64,000 nucleotides of DNA from Octopus sinensis (GCF_006345805.1 NC_043005.1:56730001-56794000), one strand, 5' to 3'. Numbered from the stretch's first letter, positions 2,781 through 64,000 are shown. Translations and numbers: made by a program. The notes: generated from the sequence alone by a model not told the origin.

Positions 2781-3765
2781 ATTTAATTGTTTTTATGTCT
2801 AGTTTCGGCACACAAGCTGTACTGGGGCACCGCTCTTTGATGTTGCTACATAATTTTAATTCACAAATGCTTTTTAGGAATTGACAGTTTGATGTAGCTG
2901 CCCTCATCTGCACCTCCTGCCACAAAGTTGGTTCATCTGGGACACTTGACAGTAAGAGGTCCAGCCTTATTTTGAAGACACCAAGATCCACCCCATGCAG
3001 GTTTCTCAGGTCCTTCAAGAGGATATTGAAGAGCCATGGACCTTTGAAGCCCAGGCTATTGCAGTATCTTGCCCCTATATCTTGATAGCAAATTTGGAGT
3101 CCTTGGCACTATGCAGTGGCGCCCAGTTCTAGTATTTGTGTAACTCTCGATGCCAAAATTTGGGACAAGTCCTTCCAGGATCTTCCAGATGTATATTATG
3201 GCATATCTTTCTTGCCTACACTCTAAAGAAAAGAGTCTTAATCTTTTGTGTCTTTCCCAATAGCTTATATGCTGCATAGAGGTTATCTTCTTCATGTAGC
3301 TTCATTGGATTGCCTCAAGTTGAGATTAATTTGACACTTGTTGGTGACCATAGGTGGGAGCAATAGTCAAAGTGGCTTAGGACAAGTGTCCTCCACAGCA
3401 CCATTATGGTTTCCTGATCTCTTGTTCTGAAATTCTAAGAATTCATCCGGTCAGCTACCTACATTTCATAGCCAGTTTAGCAACATGCACATGAAAGGTT
3501 ACTTCATTACTCATGTAAATGCCCAGGTCTCGCACTGACTGTGCCTCTGGGATTGCAGTCCCTCCAGGTCCAGTGTATTTAATGGGTATTGCATTTAGTT
3601 TTGCAAGGAAGCTCTGAGAGAGGGACTTGCTTACATACTTTTAGAAGGATTACTGGGAATCCATCAGGGCCAGTAGCTGAGTTTGGGTTCGTTTCATCTA
3701 TAGCCCTTATTACATCGTCTTCCTTTATATTGATGTAATCAATCATCATTGCCTCTGTTTTTATA
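2781..3765 (-). mobile_element. 3' end of a CR1/L2-group (Crack/Daphne-like) LINE ORF2, degenerate
   Basis: ORF 3056-3295: SYWERHKRLRLFSLECRQERYAIIYIWKILEGLVPN is a typical post-RT C-terminus; the element ends at the (TA)n tract. Confidence 0.75.
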
Positions 3766-3829
3766 TCTGCAGTGTGTATATGTGTGTGTGTGTGTATGTT
3801 TGTGTGTATGTGTGAGTATATATATAAGG

Positions 3830-5379
3830 AACAACTATATAATGGCTACCGTCCCAGCCACCGCATTCATTTTTTAGACCCAATATGCAAACACAGAGAC
3901 ACAAGATAGCACCAAACAGGCAGGAGGAACCAAAAGTGATAAAAATTATTAATCTAACTCACAATGAACTAATAGCAAACCAAATAAATATACTCTCCAA
4001 AGGACTCAAGTTTACACCCACCCCACAACACCCCAACTACAATGAAATGAAAGAAGACATCGCAGAATTCTGTAGAAAATTACGACTTACTGAGGAGCTA
4101 TATGACAAATTCAACGAGGACGAATCGTTGGTCAGAAATAGGAGTATCTACACCCCCTCAAAAGGTAAGAACAAAACACTTAATCGTTTCTGTGAACACA
4201 TCTCGAATTACCCATATCAACACATGCACAAACAAAAACCCAAACCAAACTTCAGCAAAAAAGGATGGGCTGAGCTGAACAAATTAAAAAATGACAAAGC
4301 AATAACAATCAAAGAGGCCGATAAAGGGAGTACAGTTGTTTTAATGGACACGACATTTTACATAACTTTAGTACTATCTATGTTGGAAGACACAACATAT
4401 TATGGAAAGGCACAAAACTACAGTCAACAAAAAATAATGAGGGATCTAAAATCCATGTTAACCCCATACAAAGAAGGGCTCACCGACAAAGAATATGACT
4501 ATATGACCAATTTCACAAGTAAAACCAGTCAATTCTACGGTATTCCCAAGATACACAAAAGTGAGAAAATAAGTAATGCATGCAAGATAACCAGACAAAA
4601 TAATTAAAGTCCCTAATCCTAATGACCTCAAATTGAGACCTACAATAGCAGGTCCCGCATGCGAAACCCACCGCCTGAGTAACTTTTTAGATACCCTCTT
4701 AAAACCACTCCTCAAACATGTCAAAAGCTATATAAGGGACGACCTGGATATGCTCAATCACCTACCTAATACTATAAACAAAAACACCCTACTAGTATCC
4801 TTCGATGTAGTCAACCTCTATTCCAATATCCCCCACAACCTAGGAATAGAGGCAATTCAATTCTGGCTAGAGAATCACGCCAACGAACTCCCACATCGCA
4901 TCAAAAAAGAATTCGTGATAGAAGGGGTTAAATTCATCCTGGAAAATAACTACTTCGCCTTCAAAGACAACTTCTACCGACAAAAATCGGGGACTGCGAT
5001 GGGTACGCGAATGGCCCCCTCCTTTGCCAACCTAGTCATGGGATATCTAGAAATCAGTCTGTATCGTAAGGTTCTAGAAAGATATGGCAGCCCTTTTTCC
5101 CTCTACATAGAAAACAACTGGAAGAGATACCTAGATGACTGTTTCATCCTTTGGCATGAAAATATTGAGAAACTCAAAGAATTCCAAGCAATTTTAAATG
5201 GACTGGACGTAAACATCCAATTCACGATGGAATTTAGCCAGCAACAACTCCCCTTCCTCGGCATCCTCATTAAGAAATCTAATAATGTAATAGAAACAGA
5301 TATATGCTACAAGCCTACGGATTATAAGCAATATCTTCCTTTCAATTCATGCCACCCCAGAATGAATATTCCCTTCAAT
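3830..5379 (+). mobile_element. Penelope-like element reverse transcriptase, frameshifted near 4600, endonuclease missing
   Basis: LSKGLKFTPTP, KEADKGS, FYGIPKIHK, RPTIAG, LVSFDVVNLYSNIP, GTAMGT..APSFANL, WKRYLDD, YKPTD..YL.F.SCHP in ORFs 3885-4607 and 4633-5790. Confidence 0.92.
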
Positions 5380-5774
5380 CTTCGTCGAGATTTTCAATGG
5401 GTTTTCGTCATCGCTGACATCCCGCATCCTATTCTCGGCGCTGATTTCTTGGATAGGTTTAATCTATTGGTGGATGTCAGGCGTCGGAGGCTTCTTGACA
5501 GCACGACGTCGCTCTCTACGCCGACTAGGAGTTCCACCAATGCGGTCCTTAGCCCGACATTCTTTGTTGCCACCTCTGGAGACGCTTTTCACTCTCTTTT
5601 GGCTTCATTTCCGGAGCTAGTGGACATTGCCTTTCAACCGGAAAAGCCTACCCACTCGACCCTTCATTTTATCACCACCACTGGGCCGCCTGTATTGTCG
5701 CGCTCACGGCGCCTTGCGCCTGACCGTCTAAAAGCGGCTAGGGCCGAGTTTGAGCACATGCTCCAACTTGGCCT
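5380..5774 (+). mobile_element. Gypsy pol fragment (end of protease region to start of RT), fused in frame to the PLE RT
   Basis: LRRDFQWVFVIADIPHPILGADFL...HFITTTGPPV.SR.RRLAPDRLKAARAEFEHMLQLG; GC content rises at ~5383. Confidence 0.88.
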
Positions 5775-5922
5775 TATGAAACAATTATGAGCTATTCCAT
5801 TATACTCTTTATCATAAAAAATTCTTTTTGATAAGGTTCGTTATTTCAAGAACCGAAACATGTAAAAATTAAAATTTATCTAATATAGTGGCATTTTCAA
5901 ACTTCTTTTTTACAAATATATA
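5775..5922. repeat. Direct repeat A (~148 bp, pLTR-like), partner at 7506-7653
   Basis: tatgaaacaattatga...ttacaaatatata is near-identical at both positions. Confidence 0.92.
5825..5867 (+). ncRNA. Minimal hammerhead-like motif, U3-A8 variant
   Basis: ttt-TTGATAA-ggttc[gttatttcaa]gaacc-GAAA-CATG-T-A-aaa. Perfect 5-bp stem II and palindromic ACATGT stem III, but stem I is weak and A-U only. Confidence 0.5.
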
Positions 5923-6311
5923 TATATATATATATATACATATGTATCCACACATATACAAATCCAATAGTGACCACAATATGTTTAGTACATTGACTCG
6001 TACTATGTACATAACTATGTACTAAAAGCCAAAAATCAATAAATATCAATATACATAAATATAAAGATAAATTTACACACAAGTACCAGTATATAAAAAA
6101 TACAAATATGTACACACAAAAAACACTTATATCAAAATATATAAATACACAAACATTCATATACAAATACATATATTATGCACTTATACATAGATATACA
6201 AAAAATAATATGCCCATAACCCTTTACAATTTTGTATTTCTAAATATAATAAAGTAAAAAAGCTCTTAACAACTATTTATATCTATTTTAAAGGGTATTT
6301 AGAAATAAGTA

Positions 6312-62087: not shown

Positions 62088-62628
62088 TTATTTGTATCTA
62101 GAGAAAGTATACGCCAGTCTATGAAGGCATGAAACATTTCGTTCCTTAAAATTGTTAATAATTGGTAAATTAGCCCTAATTATAAAGAAAATCTCATTAA
62201 TGCATAATGAGCATTTTCTATTCCTATTATTATACGCTGGTGCAGATATAAGTATTTTCCATTGCAAATTATAATTGATTTTTTTTGCCCTTAAGCTCCC
62301 ATATATATGCACCTAACCCTGTAGAATTAATCCTATTCCTATTTTTAAAAGTATATCTGTGATAATTAAGTCTCTGTTTCAAATTATTCTTAGTAGCCCC
62401 AATATATACTCTATTATCATATTGTGTACTTACTATGCATTGGTATACTACCTCCTTTTTCAAACAGTCATTATTGAAGACACAATTTTCCTTAATTCTA
62501 CAATTGCACCTATTATCTTGCTGTAATTGCTTTACTTTATTATGATTACTTGCTGCTGTATTCTTATCAATATTATGATTATTAATATTACTATCATTAT
62601 TACTTATTATTCCCATATGCATCGGCAT
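62088..62628 (-). pseudogene. GIY-YIG endonuclease (copy 2), frameshifted in an A-run near 62280
   Basis: Split into ORFs 62269-62628 and 62088-62312. Confidence 0.8.
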
Positions 62629-63333
62629 ATTATTATTGATAATATTGCTCTCGTTATATTTTACGTTATTATTATTATTATTATTACATACAGAGTTGTA
62701 TATACATATATATGTATGTAGATATGTGTTTTTGTTTGTATATTTGTTGACAGTACATGATGGTTTTCTCGTCCACTTTCATGTGTGCATGCTTGTGTAT
62801 GTGCGATTGGATGCATAAATATATTTGTATGTGTTCCATTAAATGCAAGTTTGCGTTGTCCACTGTATACTTTTTTGTGGAAGTGTGCGTGGATGTGTAT
62901 GTGTGTGTAGGTGCAATTCGGGGGTGTTGGGTGAGATAGAGGATATGGTTGTTTATGTTTACGTAGTGCGTAGCTATATGTAGGTTTGCCTTGTCCATCG
63001 TTTACTTTTTGGTGCAGGAGTTCATTAAGTTGACCAAAATTACGACAACCAAGAATCACTACTGTTGCTCCCATCGGAACACAAGGTAAAATCTATAATG
63101 AACTCCTGCACTACACTTGACAAAACAGTGAGGAACGACTTACAGCTTATAATATATTTTTCGCCTTTTCAAGAACATGGATTCTATTGAATGTATATAG
63201 CATGGACTCTATTGAATGTATGTAACAATTATGAACTGTTCCATTATACTTTTTATGTATATAGCATGGACTCTATTGAATGTATGAAACAATTATGAAC
63301 TATTCCATTATACTCTTTATTATAAAAAAATTC

Positions 63334-63376
63334 TTTTTGATAAGGTTCGTTATTTCAAGAACCGAAACATGTAAAA
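63334..63376 (+). ncRNA. U3-A8 hammerhead-like motif (copy 2, repeat B); the repeat A copy at ~61601-61643 has a broken stem II
   Basis: TTGATAA-ggttc...gaacc-GAAACATGTA here, versus ggttc...gagaa at 61626-61630. Confidence 0.5.
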
Positions 63377-63489
63377 TTTAAAATTTATCTAATATAGTGG
63401 CATTTTCAAACTTCTTTTTTACAAATATATACCCACTCGTATACGATCTATATTATATATATATATATATATATATATATATATATATA

Positions 63490-64000
63490 TTCATATATTT
63501 CATGTGGGTTTAAAGGACACCTCTAAAAAGGACGGTCCACTCATCCTCTCTGCTGAAGTATTATCTGCTTTCGAGTCCATCAAGAAGGAATTAGTTTCTG
63601 TCCCGTTGCTAGCACATCCGATTCCCGATGCTTCACTCTCGTTAACAGTGGATGCATCGGACACTGCGGTCGGCGCGGTACTGCAACACACAGTGGACGA
63701 TCAGACTCGACCTCTAGCTTTCTTCTCTCGCCAGTTACAACTGGCTGAGCTGCGGTACAGCACTTTTGATCGCAAACTCTTGACGATCTACCTGTCAATT
63801 CGTCGTTTTCAACATCAACTCGAAGGGCGAGATTTTGTGATCTATACTGATCACACGCCTCTTACGTTTGCCCTATCGTCTAAGACGGACAAACTCTTGC
63901 CTCGTGCTTTCCGTCACCTGGATTTTATTTCACAATTTACCAGTGACATTCGTCACATACCTGGAAAAGAGAACGTTCCTGTTGACGCTCTTTCTCGTCT
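63490..64000 (+). mobile_element. Gypsy RNase H region (copy 2, truncated by the window)
   Basis: Matches 7757-8265. Confidence 0.92.

Follow-up and report, generated by a model that had tools for sequence, protein, structure and literature searches.

Two copies of a broken transposon patchwork in Octopus sinensis as probable passengers of a local host-gene duplication

Two colinear copies of a composite repeat module occur 55.8 kb apart on a chromosome of Octopus sinensis, and both are probably passengers of a recent local duplication of ~72 kb that includes host genes, rather than copies of a composite jumping element. The window, that is the whole stretch of DNA analyzed, comprises 64,000 nucleotides (CM016867.1:56,730,001-56,794,000) and lies in a region that the assembly resolves poorly. 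In the scheme put forward here, the module would be a dead nested patchwork of transposons (a LINE 3′ fragment, a truncated PLE-type reverse transcriptase (RT) and a Gypsy-type pol), immobile as a unit and copied passively at the DNA level when the surrounding O. sinensis sequence underwent a recent tandem segmental duplication. The ~72 kb unit would consist, in order, of a GT23-like gene, its palindromic 3′ flank, ~10 kb, (TA)n, the module, ZNF236 and (TA)n, with LOC115215933 and module copy 1 in unit 1, and LOC115215946 and module copy 2 in unit 2. Unit 2 may once have held ~11.1 kb that are now missing, a filler of 246 bp standing in their place. Such a loss would account both for the apparent start of homology exactly at the LINE tail and for a spacing of 55.8 kb instead of ~67-72 kb.

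Composition and divergence of the module copies

Self-BLAST aligns 2698-8265 with 58484-64000 at 98.8% identity, (TA)n included, and unique homology sets in at 2783/2787 in copy 1 and at 58553/58557 in copy 2. The order and strands of the parts correspond between 2787-8265 and 58557-64000, as an earlier note on this DNA had claimed. Followed past position 64,000, as that note had proposed, the homology runs at least 634 bp beyond the end of the window, to copy-1 position 8899/8900, and copy 2 reaches at least chromosome position 56,794,634. The left edge is a LINE 3′ end with (TA)n in both copies, and the flanks to the left of (TA)n differ, both by self-BLAST and on reading of the sequence; the earlier description is accurate on both points. 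Beyond the TA-rich tract on the left of copy 1, nothing resembles the left flank of copy 2, self-BLAST matches there being of low complexity only. As an observation the duplicated module is real.

Over 2787-8900 (6,114 bp), the module copies differ by 12 substitutions (0.20%), three 1-bp indels and a 42-bp difference in (TA)n length. The substitutions are clustered, 10 of the 12 falling within 5261-5854 (<600 bp; P<1e-5 under uniformity). The private substitutions described earlier (LPFLG versus LPFLD, VLSRSRR versus VFSRPRR) are present in the module copies, as is the GIY-YIG frameshift ascribed to copy 2, a 1-bp insertion at 62279. The conclusion once drawn from the private substitutions, namely that they exclude a haplotig, is invalid on that argument alone: versions of the host gene differ by 0.24-0.41%, and heterozygosity in a sister species is 1.22%. 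Because the divergence of the copies falls inside the allelic range, private substitutions are compatible with an allelic origin.

Table 1. Features of the module, the host segment and their junctions (window positions; parts of the module given for copy 1)
Feature	Position	Strand	Remarks
Degenerate TA-rich tract, left of copy 1	2380-2786	.	LINE tail plus microsatellite; direct reading
LINE (non-LTR) 3′ fragment, 5′-truncated	2787-3600	-	C-terminal part of RT ORF plus 3′ UTR; ends at (TA)n
Penelope-like (PLE-type) RT ORFs	3885-5380	+	3′-truncated; joined in frame to Gypsy fragment
Ty3/Gypsy-type pol fragment	5380-5775	+	C-terminal part of protease to start of RT; P0010 residues 66-201
Direct repeat 1, 149 bp	5775-5922	+	Degenerate hammerhead-like motif inside
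GIY-YIG-like endonuclease ORF	6312-6851	-	179 aa in copy 1; frameshifted, 119 aa in copy 2
Direct repeat 2	7506-7653	+	Self-BLAST and alignment of four repeat copies
Internal (TA)n tract	7654-7759	.	42 bp shorter in copy 2
Same Gypsy-type pol resumed: RNase H and integrase	7760-9665	+	P0010 residues 428-961 onward
Host gene ZNF236 (XP_036361872.1)	24693-31811	-	Once on chromosome; second copy on unplaced scaffold VCDQ01001594.1
(TA)n-type tract, unit 1/unit 2 junction	38593-38620	.	Between ZNF236 side and start of GT23 segment
Duplicated host segment U1	38593-58237	+	Holds GT23/FUT8-like LOC115215946 (gene 40325-54634)
Ancestral palindrome, inner part of left arm	57543-58237	+	Comparison with loci L001, L003 and L005
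Filler, 246 bp	58238-58483	.	Between palindrome breakpoint and LINE tail
Pure (TA)36	58484-58556	.	LINE tail of copy 2 and right breakpoint of the missing 11.1 kb
Module copy 2	58557-64000	+	Parts as in 2787-8265; extends at least to 56,794,634

The region of the LINE fragment contains ORFs at 2719-3018 and 3056-3295. The fragment shares 73% DNA identity over 700-930 bp with an RT-bearing LINE in O. vulgaris (locus L005), of which the 673-aa ORF matches RVT_1 at 1.5e-29 and which likewise ends in (TA)n. The two elements are homologous up to the end of the ORF and differ in their 3′ UTRs, each of which is followed by (TA)n. On this comparison, (TA)n is the native tail of the LINE family in the module.

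The putative PLE components (3885-5380 and 5775-7653) comprise an RT with ORFs at 3885-4607 and 4633-5790, which matches RVT_1 at 1.7e-8, and a putative GIY-YIG endonuclease, whose Pfam match (E 0.0016) is weaker than the curated cut-off. Since the RT and GIY-YIG ORFs lie on opposite strands, they derive from different fragments. A related RT is found elsewhere in the window, at 49418-50640 on the minus strand. The two parts of the Gypsy-type pol share 45% (first part; BLASTP, E 7e-37) and 52% (second part; BLASTP) identity with a full-length relative (P0010), and the second part matches the Pfam families RT_RNaseH_2, RT_RNaseH, Integrase_H2C2 and rve. Between them ~226 residues of the RT core are absent, as is the N-terminal part of the protein; the RT core was probably replaced by a PLE fragment, with the direct repeats as bounds. 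No LTR is identifiable at ~10382, where the earlier note had placed one, and no LTR pair was found around the Gypsy-type components.

The two direct repeats are 96.6% identical by self-BLAST. Their hammerhead-like core reads UUGAUAAG (...CGAAAC) as against CUGAUGAG, with two deviating positions, both of which are invariant in the core of the ribozyme. Because these invariant positions are altered, the motif is a relic at best. The 149-bp repeats gave no Rfam match to a hammerhead ribozyme at the gathering score or at E≤5. As to the broken stem reported for the hammerhead of copy 2, the change itself (ACC>GAA at 61628-61630) is present, but the hammerhead to which it was assigned has no match in Rfam.

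Host-sequence duplication and its breakpoints

The GT23-like gene of the window has a twin, and host sequence including this gene has been duplicated along with the module in the same order and orientation. In window coordinates, the twin segment (U0, with LOC115215933) runs from -32,600 to -8,604, upstream of the window. LOC115215933 and LOC115215946 are identical at 381 of 386 residues (99%), the twin starts 72.4 kb upstream, and DNA homology between U0 and U1 spans 39838 to 58237. Each GT23-like gene copy is followed by one module copy, again in the same order and orientation, across a gap of 11,391 bp in unit 1 and 320 bp in unit 2. The tandem period is 72.4 kb as measured by the chromosome offset and 71.8 kb on an unplaced scaffold of 86 kb. 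On that scaffold, the order is window-equivalent 28.0-57.5 kb, the palindrome, ~27 kb and then 15.2-41.8 kb, and ZNF236 is present twice, one copy being partial at the scaffold end. The two scaffold ends are 99.91% identical to each other; the scaffold may therefore be a wrap-around assembly and is not proof of a full second unit.

Three versions of the gene region are pairwise distinct, with 26-44 substitutions in 10.9 kb, and therefore cannot all be alleles in a diploid, so that at least two real loci must exist. The divergence of the module copies is of the same order as that of the gene copies. A partial gene copy (U0b) borders module copy 1 on its upstream side; it is 1.4-2.0% diverged and took no part in the duplication of the module. 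Exact and cluster look-ups found neither a second ZNF236 nor a third GT23 gene annotated on the chromosome past module copy 2; a complete unit 2 is therefore missing from the chromosome in this assembly, and the duplicated block extends rightward for at least 6.1 and at most ~22 kb.

The junction at which the end of one unit meets the start of the next (ZNF236 side, (TA)n, GT23 segment, at ~38593) does not occur in O. vulgaris, where the homologous locus sets in at the (TA)n-type tract itself. The junction is present in two haplotype versions, one on the chromosome and one on the scaffold, ~0.55% apart, and is therefore not a one-off misjoin. A secondary breakpoint lies within unit 2. The chromosome copy departs from the ancestral arrangement at 58237/58238, ~22 bp from the inner end of the palindrome arm; the palindromic arrangement past this point is common to O. 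vulgaris, U0 and the scaffold, and only the window deviates. By coordinate arithmetic, ~11.1 kb are missing in unit 2 between 58237 and the LINE (TA)n. The filler found there has no match in ~200 kb of related loci. The LINE-tail boundary marks this secondary break inside a (TA)n tract and not the end of a mobile element or the edge of the duplicated unit; as (TA)n is the native tail of the LINE family, a break within it mimics an exact element end.

Both the unit junction at ~38.6 kb and the secondary breakpoint lie in (TA)n tracts or at the palindrome centre. (TA)n tracts and palindrome centres are prone to form hairpins or cruciforms and to break. Breakage or template switching at (TA)n or at the palindrome centre could have produced the present arrangement; the ends would then have been joined with filler, or (TA)n tracts would have exchanged unequally.

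Alternative origins of the second copy

The earlier note had hesitated between an SVA-like composite retroposon and a tandem segmental duplication of 55.8 kb. The former supposes that read-through transcription of the minus strand gave an RNA of at least 6.1 kb with the LINE 3′ UTR and (TA)n at its end, and that the LINE machinery recognized this RNA and reverse-transcribed it into a new site. Homology does stop exactly at the LINE 3′ end, both copies passing into (TA)n after an identical LINE 3′ base, and an independent copy of the family has a native (TA)n tail; in addition, the (TA)36 of copy 2 is short and pure, like a young tail, and the duplicated block as assembled measures merely 6-22 kb. 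Retroposition is nevertheless very improbable, since only two copies are seen in ~200 kb, 55.8 kb apart in one tandem array, where they share their orientation and each follows a copy of one host gene; because of this array, a unit-2 module copy is expected at the site of copy 2 without retroposition. Nor is the flank of copy 2 an intact ancestral target, for the window departs from it at 58237 and not at the tail, 320 bp from the module and with 246 unmatched bp between. No further copy of any internal junction occurs in ~200 kb of related sequence, every coding part is broken, and neither a 5′ end, as far as 634 bp past the window, nor a target-site duplication is visible, all of which leaves the retroposon proposal unsupported. 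The segmental duplication proposal was right in kind and wrong in size, in the position of the unit and in its LINE-tail edge, the period being ~72 kb. Taken literally, it describes a unit of exactly 2787-58483 (55.8 kb) starting from the LINE tail, with a further ZNF236 and GT23 after copy 2, and U0 as the product of an earlier, separate duplication. Both edges of such a unit would lie in (TA)n, which would make unequal exchange possible, homology extends beyond the end of the window, and the assembler could have collapsed or split a second unit that was 99.8% identical. This version is improbable all the same: the look-ups revealed no extra ZNF236 or GT23 gene on the chromosome, the GT23-like twin being upstream of the window instead of downstream; the breakpoint at 58237 and its 246 bp demand an independent event; and the sole periodicity observed is 71.8-72.4 kb.

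An assembly artefact, in which copy 2 or its 58237-58557 junction comes from a chimeric long-read contig or from haplotypes left uncollapsed where the assembler failed to resolve a tandem array, is unlikely though not far-fetched; each unit of the real genome would then have a single module and would not have lost the 11 kb, or there would be one unit only. The O. sinensis assembly (20,491 contigs, with 86% of the sequence in chromosome-scale scaffolds) carries excess duplication, with 5.2% duplicated BUSCOs compared to 0.4-0.5% in other octopus assemblies, a ten-fold excess. A 100-N gap occurs 8.5 kb left of the window in the palindrome spacer, its edges are contiguous in O. vulgaris, and the contig starting at it opens with a noisy, rearranged partial gene copy. 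The unplaced scaffold, with its 99.91% self-overlap, duplicates the locus; both breakpoints lie in sequence poorly handled by long-read assemblers; and the copies diverge within the allelic range. Against an artefact, the window holds zero N bases, and the (TA)36 of the junction is just 73 bp long and could be spanned by any long read. U1 and module copy 2 have private substitutions and are therefore not re-used consensus, the three distinct gene-region versions demand at least two real loci, and the unit junction exists in two haplotype versions.

Comparison with known rearrangements

Breakpoints in AT-rich repeats or palindromes are known from recent tandem segmental duplications and from complex rearrangements (PATRR-type, and FoSTeS/MMBIR-type with filler). 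The local duplication favored here resembles them in that DNA-level copying takes in large blocks with host genes and preserves their order and orientation, with junctions in (TA)n and near a palindrome centre and a short unmatched insertion at one of them; as in recent segmental duplications, the copies are 99.6-99.8% identical. It differs in that the mechanism is one that we infer and in the 246-bp filler, which has no matched source.

Composite RNAs are also subject to LINE-mediated transduction and retroposition, as exemplified by SVA elements. Like these, the module is a patchwork of unrelated repeat fragments with a LINE-type 3′ end and the native tail of the family at one end. Unlike them, it shows no dispersed copies, target-site duplications, defined 5′ end or intact empty site in ~200 kb of related loci, and its location is the one predicted by tandem duplication.

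False duplications and retained haplotigs in long-read, Hi-C-scaffolded assemblies likewise offer parallels: near-identical adjacent blocks, an unplaced scaffold duplicating the locus, a zero-length gap at the palindrome and the excess of duplicated BUSCOs. The locus differs from a false duplication in having at least three gene-region versions and two versions of the unit junction, which indicates a real duplication beneath any artefact.

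Two copies of a module of broken elements

Comparison of the window with itself yields a single dominant off-diagonal match, 2698-8265 against 58484-64000, which bears out the two colinear module copies described in the earlier note. The first ~90 bp of this match are filled by (TA)n, and unique homology starts at 2787 and 58557, where both copies have the identical base of a LINE 3′ end on the minus strand; to the left of (TA)n, the flanks of the two copies are unrelated. On the right, in the same-chromosome locus extending 634 bp beyond the window end, homology reaches copy-1 position 8899/8900. 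In 2787-8900, 12 substitutions (0.20%) and three single-base indels separate the copies, and their internal (TA)n differs in length by 42 bp. Ten of the 12 substitutions are clustered in 5261-5854 (P<1e-5 under uniform placement), with none in 2787-5260 and none in 6567-8900. Each copy has derived states of its own, and every difference named in the earlier note is found in the alignment; as an argument against a haplotig, such private substitutions do not suffice by themselves, as they fail to exclude allelic copies.

Features of the module and of the surrounding repeats (window positions unless a locus is named: L001, unplaced scaffold; L003, chromosome locus of the upstream twin gene; L005, O. 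vulgaris locus)
Feature	Position	Strand	Basis or property
Tandem array, 547-bp unit, at window start	1-1218		~2.2 copies, 94% identity
Non-LTR element, 3′ part	2787 to ~3600	-	73% DNA identity to O. vulgaris LINE
PLE-type RT	3885-5380	+	RVT_1 at 1.7e-8
Gypsy-type pol, residues 66-201 of full-length relative	5380-5775	+	Comparison with that relative
Fragment between 149-bp direct repeats, with GIY-YIG-like ORF on minus strand	5775-7653	mixed	Pfam E 0.0016, below cut-off
Gypsy-type pol, residues 428-961 onward	7760-9665	+	Comparison with full-length relative
Hairpin element of 320-460 bp	10578-11032; inverted 40382-40701; L003 9993-10454; L005 9993-10396		40-bp perfect-looking hairpin
Hairpin of this element	10805-10896		Weak miRNA-precursor-like Rfam matches
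Mariner/Tc1-type transposase fragment, between ZNF236 and GT23-like gene	34560-34925	+	Pfam Transposase_1, 6.6e-10
LINE endonuclease-like ORF	35787-36317	-	Adjoins 163-bp array
Tandem array, 163-bp unit	36710-37500		~5 copies, 95-96% identity
More complete element in intron of GT23-like gene	49173-51731	-	RT related to PLE-type RT of module
Palindrome	56731-58237; L001 28100-35130; L005 28760-34780; L003 31176-34641

The module is a nest of broken elements, none of which is intact. The O. vulgaris LINE related to its first segment has a 673-aa ORF that matches RVT_1 at 1.5e-29. Since the O. vulgaris relative also ends in (TA)n, this tract is the native tail of the family. At ~5380 the PLE-type RT is fused in frame to a Gypsy fragment, and ~226 residues of the Gypsy RT core are absent between the two Gypsy fragments. 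No Gypsy LTR was found in 8200-12000, the search of this interval yielding no more than a GT-rich microsatellite and a hairpin of 40 bp. When the Gypsy integrase ORF was used as query in a homologue search, the best match was only 71% identical, indicating that neither module copy has gene calls. Exact look-ups of two window ORFs, the 119-aa GIY-YIG ORF specific to copy 2 and the 374-aa ORF of the GT23 exon, returned no record. The hammerhead-like motif of the direct repeats has mismatches at two invariant positions of the catalytic core and gave no Rfam match, either at the gathering score or at E<=5; without this support, a hammerhead ribozyme was dropped.

Ahead of the RT, the intronic element of the GT23-like gene has an ORF of 385 aa that includes a CCHC zinc knuckle. 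A gag-like ORF in this position is not expected in a Penelope-like element, and its presence makes the family assignment tentative. The hairpin element is probably a young MITE-like repeat; each copy of the GT23 gene has an inverted, 98%-identical copy of it in the 5′ part.

Tandem duplication of the GT23 and ZNF236 neighbourhood

The single-exon ORF 53510-54634 is 100% identical to an O. sinensis protein encoded on CM016867.1, and the locus of this gene aligns at 100% with window 30325-64000, which places the window at CM016867.1:56,730,001-56,794,000 of assembly GCA_006345805.1. A second gene of this chromosome, LOC115215933, falls in the protein cluster; its product has 381 of 386 residues identical to that of LOC115215946, and it starts 72.4 kb farther upstream. 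DNA homology between the window segment carrying LOC115215946 (U1) and the upstream twin carrying LOC115215933 (U0) spans window 39838-58237. U0 retains the upstream flank of O. vulgaris; in U1 the place of this flank is taken by ZNF236, and homology between U1 and the O. vulgaris locus begins at a (TA)n tract, at ~38593. A third version of the GT23-like gene is carried by the unplaced 86-kb scaffold VCDQ01001594.1. In window orientation, this scaffold runs from 28.0-57.5 kb through the palindrome and ~27 kb of further sequence to 15.2-41.8 kb, with a period of 71.8 kb; its GT23 gene is followed, 40 kb downstream, by a full ZNF236-like gene, and a ZNF236 5′ part lies upstream.

In the gene region, the three versions differ by 26-44 pairwise substitutions in 10.9 kb, and three distinct versions are more than one diploid locus can carry. 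The ZNF236-to-GT23 junction exists in two versions, ~0.55% apart. In O. vulgaris, GT23 is annotated in one copy, and this species has one member only in the 90% protein cluster. The tandem duplication, with a unit of ~72 kb, is taken as real, and places a GT23-like glycosyltransferase and ZNF236 in a young, O. sinensis-specific array. The earlier note had offered a tandem segmental duplication of ~55.8 kb as one of two readings; it was right in kind, but the unit is ~72 kb, the twin gene lies upstream, and the LINE tail is a secondary breakpoint rather than the unit edge. Downstream of module copy 2, the chromosome annotation is without a further ZNF236 or GT23 gene, so that the duplicated block extends, as assembled, 6.1 to ~22 kb rightward from 58557. 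Either unit 2 (LOC115215946 with module copy 2) is truncated, or the assembler has collapsed it, or the unplaced scaffold stands for it.

At a finer scale, the gene copy of the scaffold (window 42967-57548 compared with L001, L003 and L005) is a mosaic, along which derived sites in common with U1 are interspersed with others in common with U0. This interleaving gives no proof of a chimeric scaffold with a single switch point, and gene conversion between tandem copies fits better than a single assembly switch. U0 is without 6.5 kb present upstream of the gene in O. vulgaris (L005 3028-9511, against L003 9509), a stretch composed of a LINE with a (TA)n tail and 1.2 kb kept by U1 (window 38593-39838); the difference reflects either a post-duplication deletion in U0 or an insertion gained by O. 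vulgaris.

A palindrome and a break before module copy 2

Past the GT23 gene, the 3′ flank of O. vulgaris, of U0 and of the scaffold enters a long imperfect palindrome, which is conserved in both O. sinensis and O. vulgaris. Its arms measure ~1.5 kb plus insertions, with a spacer of ~230-290 bp before the inverted right arm, and the left arm ends just past window-equivalent 58237. The window keeps this arrangement to 58237 and continues with 246 bp, (TA)36 and module copy 2. The 246-bp filler has no match in ~200 kb of related sequence, and its derivation from the end of the palindrome right arm was dropped, the similarity being not above that of shuffled controls.

From the equivalent of 58237 to the module there are 11,391 bp in unit 1 (LOC115215933 with module copy 1) versus 320 bp in unit 2, so that ~11.1 kb are missing in unit 2 as assembled. 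Hence the modules lie 55.8 kb apart, whereas the gene flanks there are spaced at 66.8 kb. The left boundary of the module, apparently an element terminus, is thus a secondary breakpoint in the microsatellite (TA)n tail of the LINE, with the partner breakpoint near the palindrome centre. The primary unit junction also lies within a (TA)n tract. Like palindromes, (TA)n tracts readily form secondary structure and break, and breakage at the tracts or at the palindrome centre may have produced these junctions.

Next to the 58237 breakpoint, U1 has 19 private substitutions in 2 kb (window 55078-57147), with almost none in the preceding 3.6 kb; this cluster could be due to mutagenic repair, gene conversion or a haplotype difference.

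State of the assembly and choice between readings

The local assembly around GT23 and ZNF236 is unreliable. A published survey comparing octopus assemblies (PMC10700109) gives, for that of O. sinensis, 20,491 contigs, 86% of the sequence in chromosome-scale scaffolds and 5.2% duplicated BUSCOs; the last figure is 0.4-0.5% for O. bimaculoides and O. vulgaris, and in the latter species heterozygosity is 1.22%. A 100-N gap in the palindrome spacer, 8.5 kb to the left of the window, has edges that are contiguous in O. vulgaris and hence zero real length. Near the start of the contig after this gap lies a noisy partial gene copy with no relation to the module duplication. The ends of the unplaced scaffold are 99.91% identical to each other, and from these near-identical ends the scaffold may be a wrap-around of one unit. 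Given the assembly quality figures, the gap and the self-overlapping scaffold, assembly may contribute to the structure at 58237-58557.

The contig after the gap, which also holds the window, has 1 kb of the palindrome right arm at its start and then returns to the last GT23 exon (L003 33629-39113, window-equivalent -8,479 to -2,996). Private to the resulting second, partial gene copy (54354-57994 equivalent) are 41 substitutions and 43 indel columns over 3.1 kb, and this contig start looks like a low-quality or chimeric end. This partial copy, just upstream of module copy 1, is the most divergent gene version (1.4-2.0%, many private indels); with this divergence and no derived sites in common with U1, its co-duplication with the module as one block is ruled out.

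The other reading of the earlier note was an SVA-like composite retroposon ending in a LINE tail. It would make the locus a case of LINE-tail-driven composite retroposition in a cephalopod, in which a long read-through transcript, antisense and with the LINE 3′ UTR and its (TA)n tail at the end, was retroposed beside the GT23-like gene, the tandem-array context being coincidental. One point favours such an event, the precise LINE end carrying its native tail; the event is nevertheless highly improbable: only two linked copies are seen, placed where the tandem duplication predicts them, the left flank of copy 2 is broken rather than an intact target, the internal junctions have no further copy in the ~200 kb of sequence compared, and no part is intact. 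The locus is most probably a transposon graveyard that a recent local duplication copied along, in a region difficult to assemble, and as such an ordinary finding.

Since breakpoints in LINE tails mimic element ends, two linked copies are insufficient to call a composite element. A duplication breakpoint in the microsatellite tail of a LINE resembles an exact mobile-element terminus, which calls for caution in the annotation of repeat-rich genomes. The recurrence of (TA)n tracts and a palindrome as breakpoints in one 100-kb region is a small, testable case of structure-prone sequence shaping structural variation.
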